Part shown: piece after piece, positions 1 through 62,260 of the stretch
Position numbering within the stretch: position 1 is the first letter of the stretch
Layout of the letters: each line of letters starts with the position of its first letter
Source: Mytilus californianus
Lineage: Eukaryota
DNA length: 64,000 nucleotides
NCBI RefSeq assembly: GCF_021869535.1
Contig: NW_026262679.1
Coordinates: forward strand, 37,138,001-37,202,000
Direction: 5' to 3'
Program-made: the position numbers and the translations under genes
Notes under the pieces: generated by a model
The model's database searches: none
The model's input: only the letters and a program-made list of their open reading frames with translations
What the model was told of the DNA's origin: nothing

Positions 1-1314
1 GGCCTTCAACGATGAGGAAAACACCCCGAAAAAGGCCCCGAAATGATAAATGTAAAACAATTCAAACGAAAAACTAACGGCCTGATTTATATGCAAAACA
101 AAACAATGAACGAAAAACGAATTTGATATACAGCAATAAAAGACTATATAAGCAAAATTACAATTTTATCATAAAATATCAAAAATTCTTTAATTGATCG
201 GTATTGTAAATGAAAAGAATTTTACAAATTTTATTCAATTGCATATATGCGAATTAAGACAATTTTGTGATATCTTATTAAGATTTTTCGGTCATATTGA
301 ACGTTTCAAAATTTTTCGTAGAGATTGCATTCATACAGACAATTTAATAGGTATCAAGTTTTCAGTTTGTCACTATCAGTATATATGGATAACATCTGTT
401 TGTTTTACGTGAAAGGATAAATATATGTCGTTTACCAACTAGAGCTGACGTTCAACTTAATTATGAACTAACTACAGAAAATTGTTCTATTTGGACAATA
501 ATGTGTGTGCGCTTATTTCGTCTATTATACTACCAAAACAAGGGAACCCTACCCTTCCACCAAAAAATAATAAACAAAAAGACGTTCTTTCATCAAATCT
601 GTAAAATAATTACAAAGTGTTGAAGGATTACTATCAATTGAAAGCGATAAATTAATTTTGATTCGACGTATATAAAATAAGAAAGTTTGATTTTTGCGAT
701 GTTTTCGCAATTGTTTGTATTGTTTTCTGGAGTTACAGTAATGAGCAGAATAAGTAAACTTTTGACTTACATATATGGTTTCATATAGTCCTATTGCAAA
801 CCGTCAACTTATTGTGATGTCAGAGCACTTTGATAATTCCCAATATTTAAATGTATATCAAACAGTATGACTGTGATATGCATCTTTTACATACGTAATG
901 ACATTTAAATCACATGAATAGAGTAAGTTAAATGTAAAGCCGAATTCTTCTTATTGGACAATTTCGATTAAATACAAGAAATGTATCATAGCTAATAATT
1001 GAAAAAAGGAAAAGTTGAGGATTCAAAAATTTTAATTTAGCTAAGCAGTTACATCTGTTTTATAGTTAAAGAAGCACACGGGAGTAAAGATTTATTACTA
1101 CAGTAATTTCTTCCATGTAGCATCAAAATCCTTGATCAGGGAGGTGTCGGTTTTTGTTCCGGATGTATAAAGACCGTACCCCCTCCAAAAGTGTCACAGT
1201 AAGTATTATGAGCGACCTGCAGATTACCTGATGTAAGGCCAAATTCCTTACCATACCTTGGTGAAAAGTTGCTGTTCAATTTGTGTGTCCTTACTCTCTT
1301 TCCATTAATAGGCC

Positions 1315-1606
1315 AAAACCTACCATTCTTTATGTTCCTGTCCCAAGTCAGGAGGGTGTAACTCAATGGTTGTCGTTTGTTGCTTTATATCATATTAGTT
1401 TTTCGTTTATTGTTTTGGTACATAAATCATGCCGTTAGTTTTCTCGTTTGAATTGTTTTATATTTGTCATTTCGGGGATTTGCTCATTGTGGAAGGCCAT
1501 ATAATGACCTTTAATAGTTACTAACGTCTATTTATATGCCATTTTGTTTCTGGTGAAGATTAATTTTGTCTCATTCGCAATCATACCACATCTTCTTATT
1601 TTTATA
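1315..1606 (+). mobile_element. PLE-derived 3'-region repeat, family A (5'-truncated)
   Basis: Reverse complement of the repeat at 11568-12410 and 38737-39715; ends in the shared terminus TCATACCACATCTTCTTATTTTT; keeps only the CCTG-TCCCAAGT-CAGG hairpin of the twister. Confidence 0.8.
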
Positions 1607-4331
1607 CTAAAATTAATATATTGATTGTTATTTATTGAAATATTGTCAACTGGACGTTCAGAAAATAACAACGAATTACATTTACATCAAGAAATAAAAT
1701 ATATAAAGATATATGTTCTATATCATTTTTCTGAATTAATTTACTCACGAATTGTTTGCCACTGGGAAATATAGAACTGTTATGATGTGTTGATGCCGAT
1801 ATTATGCTTTTATATGAGGACCTGTAAACCTGTCCTAATCACTATTAGATTAAAACGTAAAAACTGCCTAAGATATTAAATCGATGCATTTTAAATTGTT
1901 GCATGCATGACGTTCTTTTGCATCAAAAATAATAAACAACTTTTTAAAATATCATAGAAAAACACTTAAATATATCTATACAACGAAGTTACAGCATCAT
2001 TTCAAATATAAAGGCACGTATATATTGGTGATATTTGAGTATAGGGGATAATCAATGGATAACATATGCTACATGTAGCTCACCCTTATTCAACCCCAAT
2101 ATTGATAGTGTTGACGGCGAGAATGTCATTCGGTACAGATCGTCACGTTTACCCAAATAAACTTCCTCGTACTTTGAGCGTTCCAGAACGTCTTACCACA
2201 TACATGTATCATCTCAAGACAAAATTACGTGTAGCTTATTTGTTTTATCCCGAGAATTTCTTACATAATATAACACTAACTAAACTAACAGTTAGTGTGT
2301 TACTGTCGGTATAGCAGTGATATTTTTATCAAATCTGTGCCCAAATACATATCAATGCATAACTATTGAGGAAATTTTAAGGAAAGTTGCCTACGATTAA
2401 GACTTCATATATATAAGCATATGCATACAGTTTTTACAGATTACTATTACATATTAATAATAAGTTTCATTGATTGGGTGATTGTTGTTTGCTTAACGTT
2501 CAGTGGCAAATATTTTATTTACCTAGTAACTGATCACGGACCTCTCATGGAATCGTACCTTGGTAACACGGACTTCCGAAGAGATATCATTGTATTTTGT
2601 CAAGATGGGACATCCGTTTGAATATATGGGATGTATTAATACGCAACCACGTCCAGCCATTATCGCATCCGATTCTTTGTTTTTTTTTTTACCCGTTCTT
2701 TTTCGCAAAATCTATCAAGATTTTAAAAATAATTGCCAAATTGGAGTAGTCGTTTTGCTGAACACGATGTTTAAATACGCAGCCTAACGACGGAATGTGA
2801 TAGTTAAATAAGATGCCTCAAGTTAGCAAATTTCCATGGTCTTTAAACGTAAAATAACCCTTGTAATTTTTTTTATGAGGGGGGGGGGGGGGGGGGGGGG
2901 GGGCGGGGGGGTGGTAATAGGTTACCTATTGCAAAATTTCTACCACTACTTAACAAAACCTTTTTTCCAGTGGTAGTCCAAATTCCCAAATCTTCATCCA
3001 AGTCGACGATGTTTCCTACCAAATTGATTTTCGTTGATTCATTCTCAACCTGTATATGCTTGCAATCTTTGGAAAACAGAAATCAATCTTATACTGTATA
3101 TGTACTGTATAAATGAGCTACTTTAATACATTATATATATACAATGTTCATGTATGATCCGCAGGTTCGATTTTAATCACCCAAAATAAAATAAAAAAAA
3201 AAAACATTTATGTTGCCTGCATTTGGAAGGAAACAGAATCTATAAAGAACTTAATTTTTAAATCCAATAATCTTTTTAATATTCCGACATATGTCTGCCC
3301 AATGTAAACTTGGATTTTTCGTATATCGTATCTTACATTTTACGACGCTATTATTTGCCCCGCTAATTCTTCAATTGATGCAATTTGCTATAGTTCTTTC
3401 ATTTGTTTGTTTGGTGGTGCGAAAGTTATAGCGACAATGTTTTTTCGTAACGGATAGAAATGGCATGTTCTAAAGCTCTATACAAAGGCTATTTATATTT
3501 GCATGTGTTAACAGAAGACCATTAGTTACTTATTTTCACAATTATAAATCCCTAACCATTAGGTATGCTCACATTCTGTTACTACGATTATGTTACATTT
3601 TGCACTTTTAATCAGCATAAGCAATATATATGTACTGTAGATATGAATCGTGATTTTGTTTAGTTGTAATTAAGCCATTCCTCTCAAAATAAGACCACCG
3701 TGTTCAGTTAATATTATACCATTAAACGGATATATCATATATATCAAAGAAGATTTTTTTCAAAATCAAGACATTACTCATAAAAAAAAGAAAATGACCT
3801 TATATGTATGCAAACTTATATATAATTATAATATACATTTGATATCATTTTAGATAACGTCTCTTATTTTCAAGGCTCAAAAGGCACGAATATCTATATA
3901 CATTTAAAGTGATTGATGTGACGAGAAGATAAAATAATAGATTATACACAGAAAACTTCAGAGAAGCTGTTTATTTTTAAAATTTGTGTCAACATGAGTT
4001 ATATTATATAAAGAATTCGCCACTTTTTCCTTTTAGATACTCTCTCGGGGTTGAATCATTATTTGTTAATACCTATGATCAGAAAGTACGGACTCGTACA
4101 GTAGTGTCAAGTTAATAAATATCTGACAGTCTATCCTAAATAAAAACACAAATTCACAGATACTACAGAACCAGCAATAGAAGAAAACATAAGTTAGTAT
4201 CGTATTTTGATAAAACCGAATGTTTGGCATGGTAAGTGTTAGCTTCTCTGCACGTTTAAGGACAATACAAACATCTGTGACGGGTCCTAGGTTTGGTTTT
4301 GCATGGCTAAATTTCTTCCCGTGTCAACATA

Positions 4332-11567: not shown

Positions 11568-12410
11568 TAAAAAAGGAGATGTGGTATGATTGCCAACGAA
11601 ACAACTATCCACCAAAGTTCAAATAAAGTGGATGTAAGCAATTATAGGCAACCGTACGGCCTTCGACAATGAGAAAAACCAAAACCGTATAGGCGGCTAT
11701 AAAAGGCCCAGACATGAAAAATATGAAGCAATTCAATTGAGAAAACTAACGGCCTAATTTATAAAAAAAAACAATTTACAAAAAACAATTATGACAGACG
11801 TCAACCAACGACAACCACTGAACTACAGGCTCCTGACTTGGGACAGGCAGATAAAGAATGTGGCGGGGTTAAACATGTTTGTGAGCGTTCAACCCTCCCC
11901 TAACCTGGGACAGTGGTGTAACAGCACAACATAAGAAACTATAAAAATCAGTTGAAAAAGGCTTAATTCATCAGATCGATACAAAGAAAAACATGAAACA
12001 AAAACACAGACAGGAAGTGGCAGGGTATATATCTACCCCTCATCCCTAACAACAAAAAAGACACTAAGTACAGATCTGAGAGTACTCACAGTTACTTACA
12101 GCTAGTTCAAAGCCAAGAACAACTAATAAAAAAAATCATGTGTCTATGACTAAAATATTAATCAGTACACACCCAACATGCAATGGATCTAGTGTAAAGA
12201 CGTCATCAGAGAAAAACATGACATGATATAGGTATCGACAGATTGTAGTACCGTGAAAGTACATATGTGTAATATTTAGTATGGTTTTAATTTACTGATA
12301 ACAAAACCAATATATGATTCCAATAAAAGCAATATTCATAGATTTAATTACAGTGTTGAATAGGTAACCTTTTAGAATAAGTTTGTTTAAAGGATTTATA
12401 AGTTTACACG
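11568..12410 (-). mobile_element. PLE 3' portion, family A (RT C-terminal remnant plus 3' region)
   Basis: Colinear with 38737-39600; 12250-12410 is homologous to the LNKLILKGYQFNTVI RT tail. Confidence 0.85.
11826..11907 (-). ncRNA. Candidate type-P5 twister ribozyme, family A (near intact)
   Basis: CAGGT-TA-GGG-GAGGG-...-T^AA-CCCC-GC-CACAT...ATCTG-CCTG-TCCCAAGT-CAGG-A-GCCTG; P5, T1, T2 and P4 pair, P3 has one mismatch; predicted cut between 11871 and 11870. Confidence 0.7.
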
Positions 12411-13800
12411 GATTTTCTGTACAGAAGTCACAAAACTATGCACGGTTAGATCCAAAATATTTACTAATTGATCTCTATAATATTTTTAAAAAGCTATACT
12501 ATTTAGAAATTCACATTCAGATTCTTTCTGATATGAATAAAATTGCTGATTTATTAGGTATTAAAATCTTCAAACTTGCAGATGATAGAAAGGTTTAATG
12601 AAGCAACTGCATTGTCTTTAAATAAACCAAAACAGCTTTTAATATTCTCAAAACAAAATTTAATACTTTGTATAAGTCACACAACGAGGTGACTGTGATG
12701 CAAGTAATTAATCAAATTAATATACTTGAAATATTATTTTTCTTCGAAAATGCCTAGAAAAAATCAGGACTGTAAGAGTGTTTGTCTAATTGTCTTATGC
12801 GATTATTGGTCACAGTTATACAGCTAGACTTGGACTTTGACTTTTGAAATGATCGTGTGAGTTTTGATACAATTGTTATTTGTAAATTTTCACAGATCTT
12901 CAGAACTATATTTTCGTATATATGTGGCTAAAAGAGACGAAAAAAGGTTTGTACTTAAATAAATCCTAATTCGTGTCCTTATCAAAATGCATAGAGACTC
13001 AATATCAGTTAAAGCAGAAGCGAGGTAGGCGCCAGGCGATACAAATTCAACGAAAAATAAATTGTACATTTCAACTTCAGTCTTTCCAAATATGTCAAGA
13101 GATAGACCTCTCTTAGTCTAGAAAGTAGTGAATTAATTTAAATATTTGACTTTGACACCAAATTTCCTAAAGGACATCATCAAGACACAACCAATATCAC
13201 CCATGACGAGATTTATTACGTAGGACAGGAACATGCACATATGGTTGGGTTAAATTTTTTTAATACTCAACCTTCACAATTTAAATCTCTCTCAGTGGTG
13301 ACGAATCTGTTGAGTAAAAGCCATAAACTCTATGATACCGATATGAAAGACAATGAAACACATATACAAGTAAAGCAAAACGAAATAAACCTTATCAAAG
13401 AATGCTTGCAGTTACTAAGAGCAGGCTCAAGTACTCACTTGGTGATATAGAAATCAATCACGTCGCCATACACTAAAATTACCCAATTCGCATTGATAAC
13501 GATGTGAATACTACGAATGAAGCATCTGATATGTTTATCAGAGAATCACAGAAATTTAAAATGTGGCACAGTAAAAATATGATCAAATTATTAACACAAC
13601 ACACTAGCCGAATAACAATGGTCAAAATAAGTTGGCTTGAAGCAGCGAACGACATAAAGGAATGAGAGGCACAAATAATCAAAATCAACTGAAAAGAACC
13701 ATGTATACAAATCAAATTCGAAGGAATATTTTTAGATACAAGATGAAGTAACCTGTGTACAAACCTTCCATCACAAAAAGAGAGTAACAGTTTCTCGGAT
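12410..13800 (+). pseudogene. Degraded intronless coding-like tract, family unknown
   Basis: Long stretches in one frame with sparse stops (YLLIDLYNIFKKLYYLEIHIQ...; LSKSHKLYDTDMKDNETHIQ...; NYPIRIDNDVNTTNEASDMFIRESQKFKMW...). Confidence 0.35.
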
Positions 13801-17552: not shown

Positions 17553-17849
17553 AGTGTAACAAAAATACCGAACCCCAAGGCAAATTCACCAGGGGTGAAT
17601 CCATAAAAACTGACAAATCAAACGCAATCAATCAACGGAACAAGTGAAAAATAATTGCCAAGTTCCTGACTTGGTACAGGCATTTTCTGAAGAAAACCGT
17701 TGACAAGATTCCTAACTTGTCGTAGTCACATGAACATGGCGGGGGAAAACATAATGTTTTAGATGTGAACCCTTCCTTTTTAAATGATTGACTGAATTTT
17801 GTTTGAGAAAAGTCCAGATGTCACTATTTCATACATATTCATGACGAGA

Positions 17850-32399: not shown

Positions 32400-34110
32400 A
32401 CTTAAACTGCCAGATCACTTAATTTCACATTCAAATATATTAATGATGTTCTTTCCATTAAACAATCCAAACATCTCTGATTGGGTTACATTAATATATC
32501 CTCCAGAACTAGAAATTAAAGAAAGAATAGACACGGCTGCCTCATTTTAGCGATATGTTTTAACATTGTCATAAAGCGGGAGGTTTGGCTAGCAATTACA
32601 CCATGTTTCATGAAATTATTCTTAAAATGTCCTGTACCAAGTCAGGAATATGGCAGTTGTTATCAAATAGTTCGTTTCAATGTATGATGGAGTTGATTTT
32701 TGTTGCACTTCAGTCCTTTGTTTTCCTCTTATAGTTGATGTGTTTCCCTCGGTTTTAGTTTGTAACCGGGATTTGTTTTCTATTAATCGATTTATGACTT
32801 TTGAACACCGGTATACTGCTGTTGCCTTTTTTTATACCTCGAATATGACATAAGCGGCCATTTCAATACCAGAATCTATATGACAAACGAGATGATTTTA
32901 ATTTTGAAATTATGAATTCCCCCCACCTTAGCGACAATATACAAACTTCACCTCCATATGGGATATACATTTCCCAACTCATTCGGTAATCAAGAGCTTA
33001 CAGCTGCTACTTAAACTTTATAAAACGTCACCAGTGTCTGAGCAGAAACCAGGGTTATGTCAAAGAACGCCTCGTCCGTTTTCTAAAAAAAGATCATCGG
33101 AAGATACAAAATGTACCGAACTCTAGAAAAATTCAAACCGGAAAGTCCTTTATAATATGGCAAAATCAATAGCTCAAATCCATCAAACAAATGGAAAAAA
33201 ATCCTGACTTGGTACAGACATTTCCTTATGTAGAAAATGGTGGATTAAACCTGGTTTTATAGCTAGCTAAACCTCTCACTTGTATGACAGTTGCATAAAA
33301 TTCAATTATATTGACAACAATGTGTGAGCAAAATAAACAGACATACATGTTATAGGTAAAATGTCAAAATCGGGGTACAGCAGTCAATATTGTGTTATAA
33401 TCTTAATCACTATAAAAACAAAGAATTATTTCAACAAAGAAAAACAAAATAAATGAGATTTAGACACTCTATAGACAAAGCACAATGAAAGACCTTGTTG
33501 ATAAGCATTCCGTATCAACTTCACAAATAATACATGATGGTCTTGAAGTATAGATTCTAGGTACTGACGTTGTTAATCATCTTAATTACGTGTTATAGTG
33601 TTCTTTTTTATTTGTCTTGGTATATTTTTAACCTTACTGTTTAGTCTATTTTTGGTAATATCCTTTTGGCATGCCTCGGTATCTATTCTTCCCGCCATTG
33701 TGTTATTGTTCTATGGTCATTTTAGTATTCATGTCTTTCATTTTTGTTAATGTGCTTTGTCTATGTGTCATTTTGTTTTTCTTTGTTGAAATAGTTGTTT
33801 GTCTTTTTATAGTGATTAAGATTATAACACAAAGTTGACTTATGTTCCCCAATTTTTGACATTTTTACTTATTATGTCTGTTTGTTTTGCTCACACGTTG
33901 TCATTGTAATGGAATTCTATGCGATTGTCATGCAAGTGCGAGGTTTAGCTAGCTTTAAAATACTGTCATATTCCTAACTTGGTACAGGCATATGACAGTT
34001 GTTTTCCATGCGTTTGATGTGTTTGAGCTTTTGATTTTACCATTGATAAATGACTCTCCGTTTTGAATTTCCCTTGGAGTTCGGTATTTTTGTTATTTTA
34101 CTTTTTACCA
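32400..34110 (+). mobile_element. PLE family B: RT C-terminal half plus 3' region, with two nested insertions
   Basis: SLNNPNISDWVTLIYPPELEIKE...YDKRDDFNFEI...GIYISQLIR...NQGYVKERLV...QDLVDKHSVSTSQIIHDGLEV* (stop near 33555); family C insert about 32551-32831; inverted family B insert 33108-33488. Confidence 0.9.
33202..33288 (-). ncRNA. Candidate twister, family B (core intact, P5 3' strand deleted)
   Basis: GTCATA-CAA-GTGA-GAGGT...T^AA-TCC-AC-CATTT...AAATG-TCTG-TACCAAGT-CAGG-A. Confidence 0.55.
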
Positions 34111-34624: not shown

Positions 34625-35080
34625 TGTGCTCCAAATGGTAAAAACTCATCAAAGATACCAGGCATATCATTTAATGATAATCTAGACGTTCGTTACGTCT
34701 ACACAAAACTCGCCAGTGGCAATCAAATCAAAAATAGTTGGCCAAATTAAGTACGAAGTGAAAGACCATTAAACACACACAATTCCGAAAAGATGTACAA
34801 AATAGGCTAAGGAAATCGATGACTGAGGGTAGAAAATTCTTAATGTATAATTGTTATTTTATTACGGAAAACATTACAGAAAATTATCATATTAATGATA
34901 ATTGATGTCAAAACAAAAGTGGCGACTACTTGGCTGGTGATACCCTCGAGGACGAAAGATCCACCAGCAGTGGTGGCATCGCCCCAGTGGTTGTAAAACT
35001 CACCAAAGATACGAGGCACATAATTTGGTACCCCAAACGCACGTTTCGTCTAATCAAGACTCATCAGTGACAATCCGAAA
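34625..35080 (-). mobile_element. Retrozyme-like repeat, about 1.3 units of 351 bp, with two hammerhead motifs
   Basis: Hammerhead at 35031-35072 (TGTCA-CTGATGA-GTCT-TGATT-AGAC-GAAA-CGTGCG-TT-TGGGG); decayed copy 351 bp away at about 34682-34721. Confidence 0.75.
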
Positions 35081-35084
35081 CATA

Positions 35085-35400
35085 AAATAAAGAAAGACAA
35101 AATGGCAGAAAGAAAAAGAGGAAAACAAGCAAACATAAAAACACAAAAAACAACATAGAAAACTAAAGTTTGGCAAATACGAACCCAAATAAAAACCTGG
35201 GTTATCCCAAGGTCTCCAGAATGATAAAGGAACAATCAAAAACCATAAATCAAAGAAAGACAAAATGGCAAAAAAACAACACGAGGATAATACCAACAAA
35301 AATACAAAGCAAACTTCACATAAAAAACTAAAGTTTGGGAAACACGAACCCAAGAAAAAACCTGGGTTATCTCAAGGTGCTCCGAAATCGTAAAGGGACG
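35085..35400 (-). repeat. Family D tail, tandemly duplicated (~160 bp x 2)
   Basis: AAAGAAAGACAAAATGGCA...AAAACTAAAGTTTGG...CCTGGGTTAT occurs twice. Confidence 0.75.
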
Positions 35401-38736: not shown

Positions 38737-39715
38737 ATATATAAAAAAGAAGATGTGGTATGATTGCCAATGAGACAACTCTCCACAAGAGACCAAAATG
38801 ACACAGAAATTAACAACTATAGGTCACCGTACGGCCTTCAACAATGAGCAAAGCCCATACCGCACAGTCAGCTATAAAAGGCCCCGAAATGACAATGTAA
38901 AATAATTCAAACGAGAAACTAACGGCCTAATTTATGTACAAAAATGAACGAATAACAAATATGTAACACATAAAAAAAAACGACAACCACTGAATTACAG
39001 GCTCTTGACATGGGACAGGCACATATATACAGAATGTGGCGGGGTTAAACATGTTAGCGGGATCCCAACCCTCCTCCTAACCTGGGACAGTGGTGTAACA
39101 GTACAACATAAGAACGAACTATAACAATCAGTTGAAAGAGGCTTAACTCATCAGATGGATAAAAATACAAATACTACAAATACAAGTGGACGTGGCCGGG
39201 TACTTGTACATCCAAACAACAAAAAGACACTAAGTACAAATCTAAGAGTACTCGCAGTTACTGACAGCTAGTTCAAAGCCACTAACAACTAATAAAAAAA
39301 TCATGCATCTAAGACTAAATTATCAATCCGTACACATCCAACATCCAATGGATTTAGTGTAAAGACGTCATAAACAGATAGAGAAAAACATGACCCTGTG
39401 CAATGCCAAGATACAGGTATCGACAGATTGTAGATCCATGAATGTGTATATGTATATAACAATAATATTTAGTTTGCTTTTAATTTACTGATAACAAAAT
39501 CAATATTAGTACCAATAAAAACAATATTTAATGATCTAATTACAGTGTTGAATTGGTAACCTTTTAGAATAAGTTTATTTAAAAGAACGATAAGTTTACC
39601 AGGATCGTGTCTAAATTTCCAGGCCCGGTAAACAATATTGCCGTAAAAATGAGGATATGCAATCCCGTTTGAAATAAGTTTTCTACAGGTACAACCAAAC
39701 TTCAAAACCAAATCT
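38737..39715 (-). mobile_element. PLE family A: RT C-terminus (ORF 39469-39711) plus ~730-bp 3' region with a decayed twister at 38998-39084
   Basis: LVLKFGCTCRKLISNGIAYPHFYGNIVY...LNKLILKGYQFNTVIRSL is a PLE-type RT tail. Confidence 0.85.
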
Positions 39716-40069
39716 TTATATCTGTGGAAGAATTAAGTAAAGGTTTTAAGTAATTTGTGGTAACGAAATCCCTGGCTTAATAACTTACCAGTAATACATA
39801 GATAACGTTCGTTAGTTGTAACTATTTATTACACAATGATAAAAATCAGCTTAATATTTACATGGAACGCCATTTACATTTGTATATATTTCAAACTAGA
39901 TACATGAAGAAACTCTGGTTCCAATTGTTCTATGGTATAAAGGGAGAAATAATTTTATTTCTTTATCACATACGGAAAGGCAACGGACACCAACGTCAAA
40001 ATGATAAAATATTGATTCGTCCTCTTAAGGTAAGAGAGAGGGAAGGAACATGTTATTTAAAAATCTAAG

Positions 40070-49904: not shown

Positions 49905-50864
49905 GTGCTTTATGTCTTAATGTTATTTTTTTGTGTGCATCGTACCGATTTATTGAGTTCAGCCATTTGCAAGTGATTTTAACAGAAGGTGTAACAGTTT
50001 GTTCTTGTGTTGTGCTGTTACACTTCTGTCCATGGTTAGAGAGGGTTGAACGCTCACAAACATGTTTAAACCCTCTACATTCCTTATGTGCATGTCCCAA
50101 GTGTGGAGCCTGGTAATTAAGTTATTGTTGGTCCATATCTGTCATATACGTCTTTCGTAAATTGTATTGTTATAAATAAGGCCGTTAGTTTTCTCGTTTG
50201 CTTTGTTTCACATACCTAATGTCGGGGCCTTTTAAAGGTGACTATACGATATGTTTTTTTTTTCTCGTTATGAAGTCTGAACGGTAATCTATAATTGCTT
50301 ATATCTACGTCCTTTGAAATCTGGCAGATAATTGTATAATTGACAATCATACATCATTTCCTTATTTTTAAATAAAGAGCAAAGAAATCTAACAAATACT
50401 TTCATATCTTTCCCGACAATCTCATTGTAAAAACACAGAAACAAAAAAAATCTTAAAATAATCACACGGCACATCAAAATATTTATTAGAAAATAATGTA
50501 TGATTAGGGCAAATAATTAGGATCCGGTCGAAATAGATAAAAAAAGGGAGTAGTTCGAATTGCGAAGTTATCTCAAAAATAAAATTACAACTTTTATCGA
50601 TAAATGTTAACACTTTTATGTAAGAAATTATCTGTTTCCTACATGATTTTATCCTTTGTACAAAATTATGTCCATATTCAATCGTAGGTAAAAGATAAAA
50701 TTGTGAATTTTGTTTTCTCTACAGAAATTCTTATAAGCATAATAAAGACTGCAGACAATCATACTAAAGTGCAATAAATTCATCATTAATGTCACAAATA
50801 AAACACGAAAAAAAAATCTTTGAAAAATATTCGAGTTAATGAAAAAAATGAAAACAGCACGTTA

Positions 50865-51212: not shown

Positions 51213-51794
51213 AAATAGTAAGTGCCTTTTGAATAAAAACAGAAGGAAAACTAGAAAAGAAAGAAACACGTAATCAGATTTACGTAGTAAAACATTTGTC
51301 ACTTAAAAGTAATCAGTATCATCATGATCATAATTATTGCAATTTATCATTAGTAGTCTTTATGATGTTTGAATATCGTATAGACGTATTTTTCTACGAA
51401 AATCTGTGTAAAATGGAACGGTCTACCGATTCGTTTTGAAACGAATTTCAAGAAAGTATAAAAAAAAATATACATGTATTATAATTTGTAATACATTAAT
51501 GTACATTTCAAAGAAAATCCTCGCATTCATTTCCACTTTTGCAAATTTACACGAGGAAAGTATTAACATTGCAAGAAATGGTACAGTTAGTCTCCTTTAT
51601 TTAGCAAATATATTTTCAGTCTAAGGTATTTTTACGAAAACATAAAAACTATTGTAACGTTGAATGAGGGATCACTCACCAAATAAAATTTTACCCCCCC
51701 CCCCCCCCCCCCCCCCTCCATGTAAATATACTTATCCCAAATCTGTAATTTTTTTGATGCCCTTTCGGCATTTTCTGTTTTGGTTTGCTAAAAA

Positions 51795-52520
51795 AGTAAA
51801 ACAACAAAAATACCGAACTCCAAGGAAAATTCAAAGCGGAGAGTCCCTTAACAATTGGCAAAATCTCTAACACATTAAACGAATGAAAAACAACTGTCAT
51901 ATTCCTGACTTGGTACAGGCATTTCCTTATGTAGAAATGGTGGATTAAACATGGTTTTAAAGCTGGCATAATCTCTCACTTGTATGACAGTCGCATAAAA
52001 TTCCATTATATTAACACCAATGTGAGAACAAAACAAACAGACATAATAGGTAAAAATGTCAAAAATAAGTTACAGCAGTCAACATTGTGTTATAATCTTA
52101 ATCACTATAAAAACAAACAAATATGTCAACAAAGAAAAACAAAATGGCATATAGACAAAGCACATACGCAAAAATTAAATAAAAGAATACAAAAAATTAT
52201 CATAGCACAATAACGCAATGGCGGGATGTATAAGTACCGAGCCTTGCCAAAATGATATTACCAAAAAAGGACCGAACCGTAAAGGTTAATAATTTACAAA
52301 AACAAATAAAAGAACACTATAACACGTAATTAAGATGATAAACAACGGCAGTACCTAGAATCTATACATCAAGACCATCATGTATTATGTGTGAAGTTGA
52401 TACGGAATATTTATTAACAAGGTCTTGGTATCTTCTGATGAACTTATTTAGAAAAAGGACGAGACGTTCTTGACATAACCCTGGTTCATCAACTTTCTCA
52501 GACAGCTCATTGACGTATAC
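51795..52520 (-). mobile_element. PLE family B: RT tail plus 3' region with a mutated twister (51896-51988)
   Basis: PGLCQERLVLFLNKFIRRYQDLVNKYSVSTSHIIHDGLDV*; twister GAGGT is mutated to GAGAT. Confidence 0.85.
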
Positions 52521-53700
52521 ACAACATCTCTTTTCATTTATGAAATTCCTGCAGACTTCTTTAATCACAAAAGAATGATACTGATGAATTTTTCCTTAAC
52601 GTGTCAAAATATCACATACGTAAAAGTTAATCTTTCTCTAAAAAGACTGTAAATAAGGCACTACAACTTTAGTTAACTTAGTTAACGTCATAACCATATC
52701 CAATCAATTTCATTCCTTTCAGTAAGATGGCATAAGTTAAATGTTTAAAGTTGTCTTATTTTGTTGCAAGTTTAAGATAGTCAGTAGGATAAAATGATAA
52801 TATAGGCCGTCAATGACCAAATATGGTATGTACACGGTCTGAATTTTGATTTATGGGGACTCCATTGCAATTGTTGTGCTCTGCCAATTATAAAATTTGT
52901 CAGTCAATTCACGTAAATGAAAATAACCAAAGAGTGACTGGTATTTTGATATTTTAATATGGTTACCGGGATCTATCCTGTATTGGAGAAAGACTGAGGT
53001 CAATGTTTGGATGTGCTTGAAGTAGGAATGAACATCCTAGTCCGGTTGCAAATGGGACAATAAATCCCATATCTCCAGTTGAAAGAGTGTTACGCTCTTC
53101 GCACTTGTAGAAACTGTTGGTTCATTGGACGGCCTGCTGTAAAGCTAATTTTAGACGGTATCCAACTTTCACTCTTTTCCCAGTTGCAGTCAAAATTTCC
53201 CGTCCAGCATTCCGTTGATCCTTTTAACAGTGCCAACTAATTTGATGTTTTCTAACTTAATATAAGAATAAGGTGATGTTGTATGATTATCCTATTTGTT
53301 CTCTTTTGTTATGGCGATGAAGAGTTTGGATTTTGTTTTATATCATTGTCAATAGTAAATACTAGTAGTCAATTATACAGACAGCAAAATCAAATACGAA
53401 GTTGTAAAGTTTCCGGCTAAGGCAATTTATATCTGGGGGTAGAACAATCTTAAATGTTGAATAATTCAACTTTTCATATACAGTAAATTAAAAAAAAAAG
53501 AATGATATTTCACATCAACATAAAAGACTACTATGATGTTGATACTCTAGGGGATTAAACGTCCACCAGCAGTGGCATCGACCCAGTGGTCGTAACATCT
53601 CATCAAAGATACCGGGCTTATATAGTACTGTATATTTTAAAATATTACATGCTCATATAAACATAATACTACTATAAAATTTATATACTGTAATATGAAA

Positions 53701-53925
53701 ATGTCTACATAGATATGATTTAATCCACCATTTTCTACAATGTCTACATAGATATGGTTCAATCCACCATTTTCTACATTTGAAAATGCCTGTACCAAGT
53801 CAGGAATATGACAGTTGTTGTCCATTCGTTTGATGTGTTTTGTCATTTGATTTTGCCATGTGATTAGGGACTTTCCGATTGAATTTTCCTCGGAGTTCAG
53901 TATTTTTGTGATTTTACTTTTTACT
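53701..53925 (+). mobile_element. 5'-truncated family B copy with a 39-bp duplication across its junction
   Basis: 53701-53739 is repeated at 53740-53778; keeps the twister from the cleavage site through P5. Confidence 0.8.
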
Positions 53926-61377: not shown

Positions 61378-61745
61378 CAATAACAAAAATACAAAACTCC
61401 AAGGAAAATTCAAAACGGAAAGTCCTTTATCAAATGGCAAAATCAAAAGCTCAAACACATCAAACGAATGGAAAACAACTGTCATATTCCTGACTTGGTA
61501 CAGGCATTTCCTTATGAAGAGATGGTGGATTAAACCTTCTTTTATAGCTAGCTAAACCTCCCACTTGTATGACAGTCGCATATAATTCCATTATATTGAC
61601 AACAATGTGTGAGCAAAACAAACAGACAAAATAGGTAAAAATGTCAAAAATTGGGGTACAGCAGTCAACATTGTGTTACTATCTCAATTAATATAAAAAC
61701 AAACAACTATGTCAACAAAGAAAAACAAAATGGCATATAAACACT
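61378..61745 (-). mobile_element. PLE-derived family B repeat
   Basis: Colinear with 51795-52160. Confidence 0.85.
61481..61573 (-). ncRNA. Candidate type-P5 twister ribozyme, family B (all core positions intact)
   Basis: GTCATA-CAA-GTGG-GAGGT-TTAGCTAGCTATAAAAGAAGGTT-T^AA-TCC-AC-CAT...ATG-CCTG-TACCAAGT-CAGG-AA-TATGAC; predicted cut between 61532 and 61531. Confidence 0.72.
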
Positions 61746-61959
61746 CTATAAAAGACACCAATCGAGGTAAAATAAAAACTGAGGAAATCGCATAAGTCGA
61801 GACCGGGTGAATCAATAGGATAACAGTCTCCTACTTGACATACAGCCCCCTTACGAATTCAGTAACAATAATGTCACAATTAGGAATAGGACACAATCGG
61901 TAAGTGTATAGAACAGACTTCTATACTAGTATCTAAAGATCAAAGACCGCAAAAACGCG

Positions 61960-62260
61960 TAGTTAGTAGGTTAAGATACAGACACATCGTATCGGTCAAT
62001 CAATTCGTGATGGTGACTACAAGAATTATCCAGTGTCGATTTCAGTCGTTCTTACTCATAAATCTGTTGGAGCGGTTTTTGTGTCAAAGGCATACCATTT
62101 TAAATGAATTCCGTGAAGTATGAACATGCACGAGCGTAATGTTAGTAGACGGCATACGATTTGGCGGATGGTACGTTACTGGTGAGAAATGGGAAGTTGA
62201 CAATTGGAAGTTGAAATTATTACTTGGTCACAGATACCAGTTTGAATCCCGCCATATGTA
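61960..62260 (-). mobile_element. PLE RT C-terminal fragment
   Basis: IVNFPFLTSNVPSAKSY...YARACSYF...RLKSTL...HHELIDRY. Confidence 0.8.

Follow-up and report, generated by a model that had tools for sequence, protein, structure and literature searches.

The twister class of Roth et al. (2014), as summarised in PMC8501958 and PMC6154101, includes the type-P5 form (Rfam RF02684), which makes up about 1% of the annotated twisters (PMC6154101). The G of its G-A and the A after the cut correspond to G45 and A7 in rice ribozyme numbering, both of them catalytic positions, and stem P1 is reported to be dispensable for twister cleavage (PMC6154101). Twister variants are found at the 5′ end of the Perere-3/RTE non-LTR retrotransposons of Schistosoma mansoni, whose cleavage has been demonstrated both in vitro and with reporters and whose cut is adjoined by target-site duplications (PMC8501958); a review also mentions twister for the RTE superfamily (PMC7761336). 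Penelope-like elements, in turn, have been described as hammerhead carriers (PMC6765202), and the minimal hammerheads of their pseudo-LTRs are active as dimers (Cervera and de la Pena 2014; Lunse et al. 2017, both as reported in PMC6765202). It was thought that Penelope-like elements always carry hammerheads, the Naiad and Chlamys clades being a puzzling exception, and the argument for a dispensable or parasitic hammerhead has been built on the success of these two clades without a ribozyme (PMC8557442). The same paper reports Naiads without canonical hammerheads and is silent on twister. A full-text literature search, with most subscription journals outside it, gave no publication in which twister is connected with Penelope-like or Naiad elements.

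The DNA analysed here is a 64-kb stretch of the Mytilus californianus genome (the window), for which an initial annotation had proposed that three families of Penelope-like elements share a P5-permuted twister fold downstream of their reverse transcriptase (RT) genes. The best explanation of the data, to which we assign a probability of about 0.7, is that the 3′ tails of Naiad elements carry a P5-open RNA of the twister class that would cut itself at N^AA and may do so with two copies paired. What appears to be new, judging by the sequences, is that a clade of retroelements believed to have no ribozyme carries a twister-class motif lacking a cis P1.

Copies of the motif in the window

The motif is about 95 bases long and lies on the minus strand at all seven copies listed first, in each of which the sequences attributed to families A, B, and C were found again. 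These are the complementary P5 segments CAGGT/GCCTG (A), GTCATA/TATGAC (B), and GCCAT/ATGGC (C); P3 with CACAT/ATGTG (A2), CATTT../..AAATG (B), and CATTTT/AAAATG (C); P4 with CCTG/CAGG around a TMCCAAGT loop; and the two pseudoknots, T1 being GGG:CCC in A versus GGT:ACC in B and C, and T2 being GC:GT in A versus AC:GT in B and C. Our own covariance model (R1) gives at least 12 copies in the window, some of them partial or rearranged. The 16-base core CCTGTNCCAAGTCAGG matches 16 times in the window when up to three mismatches are allowed, where shuffles predict 0.54, and about 49,800 times exactly in the 1.65-Gb genome, where the reversed control matches once.

Copy B1 of family B (61481..61573, minus strand; R1 29.5 bits) begins with P5b (61573-61568), P2b (61564-61561), a G at the catalytic position (61560), and an A (61559), followed by the 3′ strand of T1, GGT (61558-61556), palindrome 1, TAGCTAGCTA (61554-61545), and a decayed palindrome 2 (61543-61532). 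The predicted cut is at 61532/61531, immediately before AA (61531-61530); then come P2a, TCC (61529-61527), the T2 bases AC (61526-61525), the P3 hairpin (61524-61505), the P4 strands CCTG (61504-61501) and CAGG (61492-61489) enclosing the loop TACCAAGT (61500-61493), and finally P5a (61486-61481). B1 is an old, slightly decayed copy, with palindrome 2 broken and one mismatch in P3. The two other family-B copies listed first are B3 (51896..51988, minus strand), with the 3′ end of its element near 51791, and B2 (33202..33288, minus strand), intact as far as P4 and lacking the 3′ strand of P5.

Family A is represented by A1 (11826..11907, minus strand; R1 84.6 bits), with the predicted cut at 11871/11870 and a P5 extended outward by CCACTG/CAGTGG, reaching 11812-11923, and by A2 (38998..39084, minus strand; R1 83.2 bits), with GGGATCCC as palindrome 1 and with decay in the loop (CCCATG) and in P4 (CAAG). 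The family-C copies are C1 (37923..38014, minus strand), whose palindrome 1 is TGGCATGCCA, and C2 (42060..42150, minus strand), in which palindrome 2 and P2a are decayed. The earlier list lacked a family-A-like copy on the plus strand (50035..50108; R1 45.2 bits), and additional partial or rearranged copies lie at 1307-1354 (plus), 17663-17782 (minus), and 32553-32662 (plus).

A rearranged family-B copy at 33957-34066 (minus strand) has the 5′ strand of P5 fused to P4, with P2b through P3 deleted. A P3-less form (L003) of family D, a further family of this genome, resembles that deletion and is visible in RNA reads too, as a 52-nt skip. Finally, a 5′-truncated family-B tail on the plus strand (53711-53820, motif part 53751-53806) begins a few bases before the predicted cut; it contains a tandem duplication of about 37 nt that takes in the cut site and P2a as well as the beginning of P3.

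Layout, Rfam matches, and covariation

The sense strand of each Naiad tail would encode a twister-class RNA of the P5-open type, a rare permutation. The RNA would start with the 5′ strand of P5, an A, the 3′ strand of P2, and G-A, whose G occupies the position of the catalytic guanine; continue with the three T1 bases, which pair with the P4 loop, then palindrome 1, a short linker, palindrome 2, and N^AA; and end with the 5′ strand of P2, two T2 bases pairing with the end of the P4 loop, the P3 hairpin, the P4 hairpin, an A, and the 3′ strand of P5. The order of the motif and its conserved letters are those of the type-P5 twister (RF02684), with which it has in common G-A-GGG, U^AA, GC, and the loop GU-CCC-AAG, the stems P2, P3, and P4, both pseudoknots, and P5 as an open stem. 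It differs from that type in lacking a cis P1, with two palindromes of 6-12 nt in its place, in the last loop base, which is U or G instead of C with T2 changed to match, in T1, which is GGU:ACC or AGG:CCU in several families, and in the weak P2 of families B and C. The Naiad motif also differs in scoring below the Rfam threshold and in being present in tens of thousands of copies inside a retroelement; as a twister, it would enlarge the rarest permutation of the class by tens of thousands of examples.

In the alignment of family D with Rfam Twister-P5, which runs from end to end (23.1 bits, E 0.0035 in a 141-nt search; gathering threshold 37.6), the letters GAGGG, UAA, GC, and GUCCCAAG.C agree with the consensus. 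Local searches gave 18.5 bits (E 0.058) against Twister-P5 for family A, copy A1, and partial matches to twister-P1 for family B, copy B1 (12.9 bits, E 3.6), and for the foreign family E (20.2 bits, E 0.03), so that twister was the best or second-best Rfam match, always below threshold, in four separate families. The alignments put U^AA at both cuts predicted in the initial annotation, 61532/61531 and 11871/11870. The whole window yielded no Rfam match at the gathering threshold and no twister at E ≤10; it is the local searches that reveal it. Twister came out at or near the top in local searches, and no score attained the gathering threshold of the class; taken by themselves, none of the Rfam scores is significant genome-wide.

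These scores leave room for the notion that an abundant repeat with hairpins and a CCAAG loop looks like a twister by chance, as does the behaviour of a loose hand-made descriptor, which gave dozens of false matches in AT-rich DNA and whose match alone is no evidence. Given the sub-threshold scores and the false descriptor matches, weight was placed on covariation. MAFFT alignments turned out to be shifted by one column in P2b/T1 of family E and in P2a/T2 of families B and C; they were therefore not used for pair counts, and a covariance model was built instead from nine well-aligned copies, containing P2, P3, and P4 only. With it, 62 natural copies were aligned, from the window, 26 other places of the genome, and seven foreign contigs, and the T1 and T2 pseudoknots were counted though absent from the model.

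In this alignment 89.6% of the cells pair, compared with 74.8% in shuffles, and the covariation score is 0.392, compared with 0.160 in shuffles, none of the 500 shuffles reaching 0.392; since the copies share ancestry, these shuffle counts are not probabilities. A control that preserves relatedness, in which the partners were slid by one to three columns, scored at most 0.033, about ten-fold lower than observed. Both partners vary in all pairs of P2 and P3 and in three of the four P4 pairs, and 85-94% of the cells in these helices are paired. T1 pairs were counted as GC19/UA16/GU8 and GC36/AU3, giving the variants GGG:CCC, GGU:ACC, and AGG:CCU, and the first T2 pair as AU24/GU23/CG1/UG1. P4 is CCUG/CAGG in the M. 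californianus genome and AUCG/CGAU, ACCG/CGGU, or ACUG/CAGU elsewhere; the complementarity of P5 is seen in at least eight different sequences, and P3 and P5 differ wholly between families yet remain complementary. Exceptions are P2 of families B and C, the majority in the window, where it is weak (2 bp and a mismatch), and one U-U mismatch in T1 of family E.

Among 58 distinct aligned rows the letters at the catalytic positions are kept in most (the G of G-A in 43, the A+1 after the cut in 48), as are the A of G-A (47), A+2 (49), and the loop AAG (54-56) within the consensus U-NNN-AAG-K of the P4 hairpin. Departures from the conserved letters, namely the last loop base (U/G) and the outer bases of T1, are compensated by their partners. 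The P5-permuted twister fold of the initial annotation is thereby upheld, by the sub-threshold matches in four families together with covariation in every helix and both pseudoknots. The comparison indicates that the fold is maintained by selection across many element families and several assemblies, and we consider it highly probable that what selection keeps is an RNA of twister fold. Chance resemblance is already disfavoured, and indeed most improbable, in view of covariation in six paired regions, two of them pseudoknots outside the alignment model, of the twister match ranking first or second in four families, and of the same layout, built from different stems, past the RT stop in every foreign contig tested. 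Twister-sister was considered as another identity and ruled out, both twister pseudoknots being present and covarying.

Naiad-clade hosts and their relatives

The attribution of the hosts to Penelope-like elements proved correct and can be refined: by the motifs in the open reading frame (ORF) of family D, they are elements of the Naiad clade, with the motif in their 3′ untranslated tails. Family D is young, with copies 98-99% identical, and forms tandem units of 4,020 nt (L045, in the M. californianus genome itself, G000:C106), each with a single ORF of about 1,000 codons (L045:1047-4059). Its translation in L045, read directly, has an N-terminal GIY-YIG (IIYLLT*NKPGCGIQYVGETG), and the ORF further comprises a CxC motif (SCNCS), a DKA motif (PADKAANNIIIV*, with DKA instead of DKG), and a C-terminal RT (FRYLDDIL). 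Four in-frame TGA codons (L045 1213, 1306, 1339, and 2614) lie in the zinc-finger, GIY-YIG, and DKA regions, at positions that are conserved and cysteine-like, and a SECIS_1 match (31.7 bits, E 2.7e-4) lies 52 nt past the stop, at L045:4111-4175. The four TGA codons and the SECIS after the stop therefore make it probable that the family-D element encodes a selenoprotein with several selenocysteines, like the published Naiads of clams, which are selenoprotein-coding Penelope-like elements with in-frame UGA and SECIS, a description that family D matches (PMC8557442). A Pfam search of the RT and endonuclease pieces gave no relevant match; with Pfam blind to these pieces, the Naiad identity rests on the motifs, the architecture, and the description in PMC8557442. 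A partial tandem/pseudo-LTR arrangement and a high copy number are present, as expected for Naiad, and a first-look search gave 89,443 RT candidates.

In the family-D tail the stop is followed by the SECIS, the twister motif (predicted cut L045 4415/4416), and the 3′ end at about 4699, the distance from the motif to the 3′ end ranging from about 105 nt in family B to about 245 nt in family D. A position of the motif downstream of the RT stop, which the initial annotation had asserted for three stops, was found for those at 39469 and 52362, as copies A2 and B3 each follow about 375-385 nt after the end of an RT remnant on the same strand; around the third, at about 43155, no similarity to RT came up. 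The remnant upstream of A2 (39472..39813, minus strand) is a Naiad RT C-terminus that reaches the last residue of the homologue P0012, with the stop at about 39469-39471, and that upstream of B3 (52338..52568, minus strand), also C-terminal, has its ORF stop at 52362. Further RT remnants lie upstream of B1 (61902..62216, minus strand) and of A1 (12316..12423, minus strand, C-terminal). As in Perere-3/RTE, a twister-class motif resides within a retrotransposon of thousands of copies; here, however, the host is a Penelope-like element and the motif is located not at the 5′ end but in the 3′ UTR, 156-284 nt from the 3′ end.

An Rfam search of the family-D 3′ UTR gave no hammerhead match. The sole hammerhead-like match in the window, outside the listed copies of the motif, is at 35038-35086 (minus strand), with a full core (CUGAUGAG...CGAAAC) and an Rfam Hammerhead_3 score of 23.3 bits, below the threshold of 48.5. 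A conserved twister in Naiad tails would mean that the ribozyme requirement was kept in this clade and only the class exchanged, and with the class exchanged the role of the ribozyme in Penelope-like elements would become a question that can be tested by comparison.

The RT has thousands of homologues. Twelve foreign contigs, with an RT identity of 48-62%, were fetched from nine source samples (ENA, NCBI, Logan, JGI), and the motif was found 250-520 nt past the RT stop in all 11 that had enough downstream sequence, some copies being decayed; the layout past the stop is the same and the stem sequences are different. In one foreign contig (L052:4690-4720, ERZ25074796) a poly-C tract takes the place of P3, the remaining motif being kept. 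Sequence nearly identical to family D (L045:3700-4900; 74-94% of sampled 31-mers) occurs in runs of five organism labels, so that the family either is common to close relatives or has moved between them.

Two palindromes in place of P1 and the question of cleavage

The cis P1 hairpin, expected in a P5-type twister between G-A-GGG and the cut, is absent, and the 20-25 nt between T1 and the cut consist of two palindromes of 6-12 nt, a replacement that had escaped the initial annotation. On average a copy has 10.6 palindromic bases in this stretch, whereas shuffles have 2.3. Palindrome 1, 6-12 nt long and beginning one or two bases past T1, occurs in at least ten sequences, all self-complementary to the centre; examples besides those of B1, A2, and C1 are TGAGATCTCA, GGCGCC, AGGTACCT, ATGGCCAT, and CGGGCCCG. 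Palindrome 2 is AAACATGTTT, AAACCGGTTT, or AAACGTTT, ends exactly at N-1, and is interrupted in families B and C. Self-complementarity to the centre would not be required of a hairpin, and the predicted energy of the stretch is 0 to -3.9 kcal/mol alone and -14 to -19 kcal/mol as a homodimer.

Perfect inverted repeats of 6-12 bp are like many protein sites, and the palindromes could conceivably act on DNA or cDNA, as a site for a dimeric protein or as a fold-back primer, in a way unrelated to the ribozyme. Against this, the sequence of palindrome 1 varies freely between families and only its symmetry is kept, which fits self-pairing of nucleic acid better than recognition by a protein; moreover, the palindromes are located exactly where the P1 of a twister belongs, with palindrome 2 ending at N-1. 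An action at the DNA level is therefore considered improbable.

The simplest reading of the palindromes would be that two tail copies pair and thereby rebuild a P1-like junction at each active site, an idea whose basis is sequence symmetry and energy prediction. With two self-complementary stretches standing in for cis P1, the form that is active or regulated may consist of two paired copies, either two RNAs or two tails within one tandem transcript. As P1 is reported to be dispensable for cleavage (PMC6154101), its loss lowers the fit to the model but does not necessarily affect the mechanism, and the monomer might therefore also cut. That cleavage needs two paired copies is a tentative proposal, ranked well below self-cleavage as such, which we regard as somewhat favoured; the twister mechanism would place the cut at N^AA. 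The RNA might serve to process tandem transcripts or to pair two template RNAs. In any case, the motif would be a natural twister variant without cis P1 and with a built-in hint of dimer control.

Signs of cutting were sought in RNA reads and in the ends of genomic copies, two tests that are insensitive to partial or dimer-dependent cutting. Four RNA-seq runs were aligned to L045:3400-5400, and ends amounting to at least a fifth of the local depth were tabulated. The depth over the tail is 200-750, in both orientations, and is continuous across 4415/4416, where none of the four runs has a pile-up of read starts or ends of that size or a step in depth. Many of the reads continue into unrelated flanks, so most of them come from dispersed, decayed copies inside other transcripts. 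Exact matches in the genome, counted with a growing 5′ extension, number 9,975 from +7, 8,330 from +1, and 7,892 from -3; there is no step at the cut, the loss being 5.3% over 3 nt against 16.5% over the preceding 6 nt, and copies thus do not start there more often than elsewhere, unlike what is known of Perere-3/RTE.

Twenty copies of family D were mapped on the unit. All 20 share one 3′ terminus with the motif intact, and 16 are 5′-truncated at scattered points, while upstream of each of the four full-length copies there is a tail fragment from another copy, the junction falling exactly at unit position 1. These fragments start at unit 3787, 3874, 3926, and 2581, and the twister is at unit 3701-3773. 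Processing of the 5′ end by the twister of an upstream pseudo-LTR was considered as a general route and is unlikely, three of the four fragments being too short to contain the twister. Most new insertions retain an uncut twister 156-284 nt from the 3′ end.

Catalysis is compatible with the results for RNA reads and copy ends, which would suit a ribozyme inactive in single transcripts or else a structure serving another purpose. These results do argue against a ribozyme trimming every transcript, and neither the reads nor the copy ends support the suggestion that twister does the cutting job of the hammerhead in these families. Such results would also be expected of a twister-derived structured RNA whose cutting has been lost or is negligible and which persists because the 3′ tail uses it for recognition or dimerisation, for instance for RT binding in target-primed reverse transcription or for holding two templates for RT jumps; in the latter variant, RT jumping would make the partial tandems typical of Penelope-like elements. 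The reads that cross the site without a sign of cutting and the lack of an excess of copies starting there agree with such an RNA, as do the full-length copies preceded by a second tail joined at unit position 1 and the palindromes, which are variable in sequence yet self-complementary and resemble dimer linkage sites. Moreover, insertion needs an uncut tail, given that all 20 copies have an intact motif and one common 3′ terminus. However, the letters needed for catalysis only are kept in nearly all well-preserved copies (G in 43 and AA in 48/49 of the 58 rows), a pure binding element would not need the whole active-site layout together with both pseudoknots, and the RNA-seq test, which sees only ends of at least a fifth of the depth, reads mostly decayed copies in both orientations. 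A non-cutting RNA is on balance rather unlikely, though less so than the alternatives at the level of DNA or chance, and a self-cutting twister-class RNA in the Naiad tail is preferred.

Such a self-cutting RNA has a close parallel in the minimal hammerheads of Penelope-like elements, which are likewise small self-cleaving-ribozyme motifs in a terminal repeat or tail, with one helix too weak in cis and self-complementary sequence instead, pointing to pairs; like the elements that bear hammerheads, Naiads occur as partial tandems. The ribozyme class is different, and dimer action has been shown for the hammerheads, whereas for the Naiad motif it is proposed. Speculatively, Naiads may have swapped the hammerhead for a twister with a two-palindrome P1 that cuts only when tails pair, the pairing tethering a second template RNA. 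If this doubtful scheme were true, tail pairing would explain both the partial tandems and the uncut single transcripts, the motif would be the first natural dimer-gated twister, and two unrelated ribozyme classes would have converged on the same dimer logic within one order of retroelements.

At L045:4699-4702 RNA reads leave the 3′ end of the element into many different flanks. One downstream continuation, AATGCCAAGTTATGTAACAC..., is represented by 278-381 reads in three of the four runs and may be a preferred junction or a highly expressed locus.
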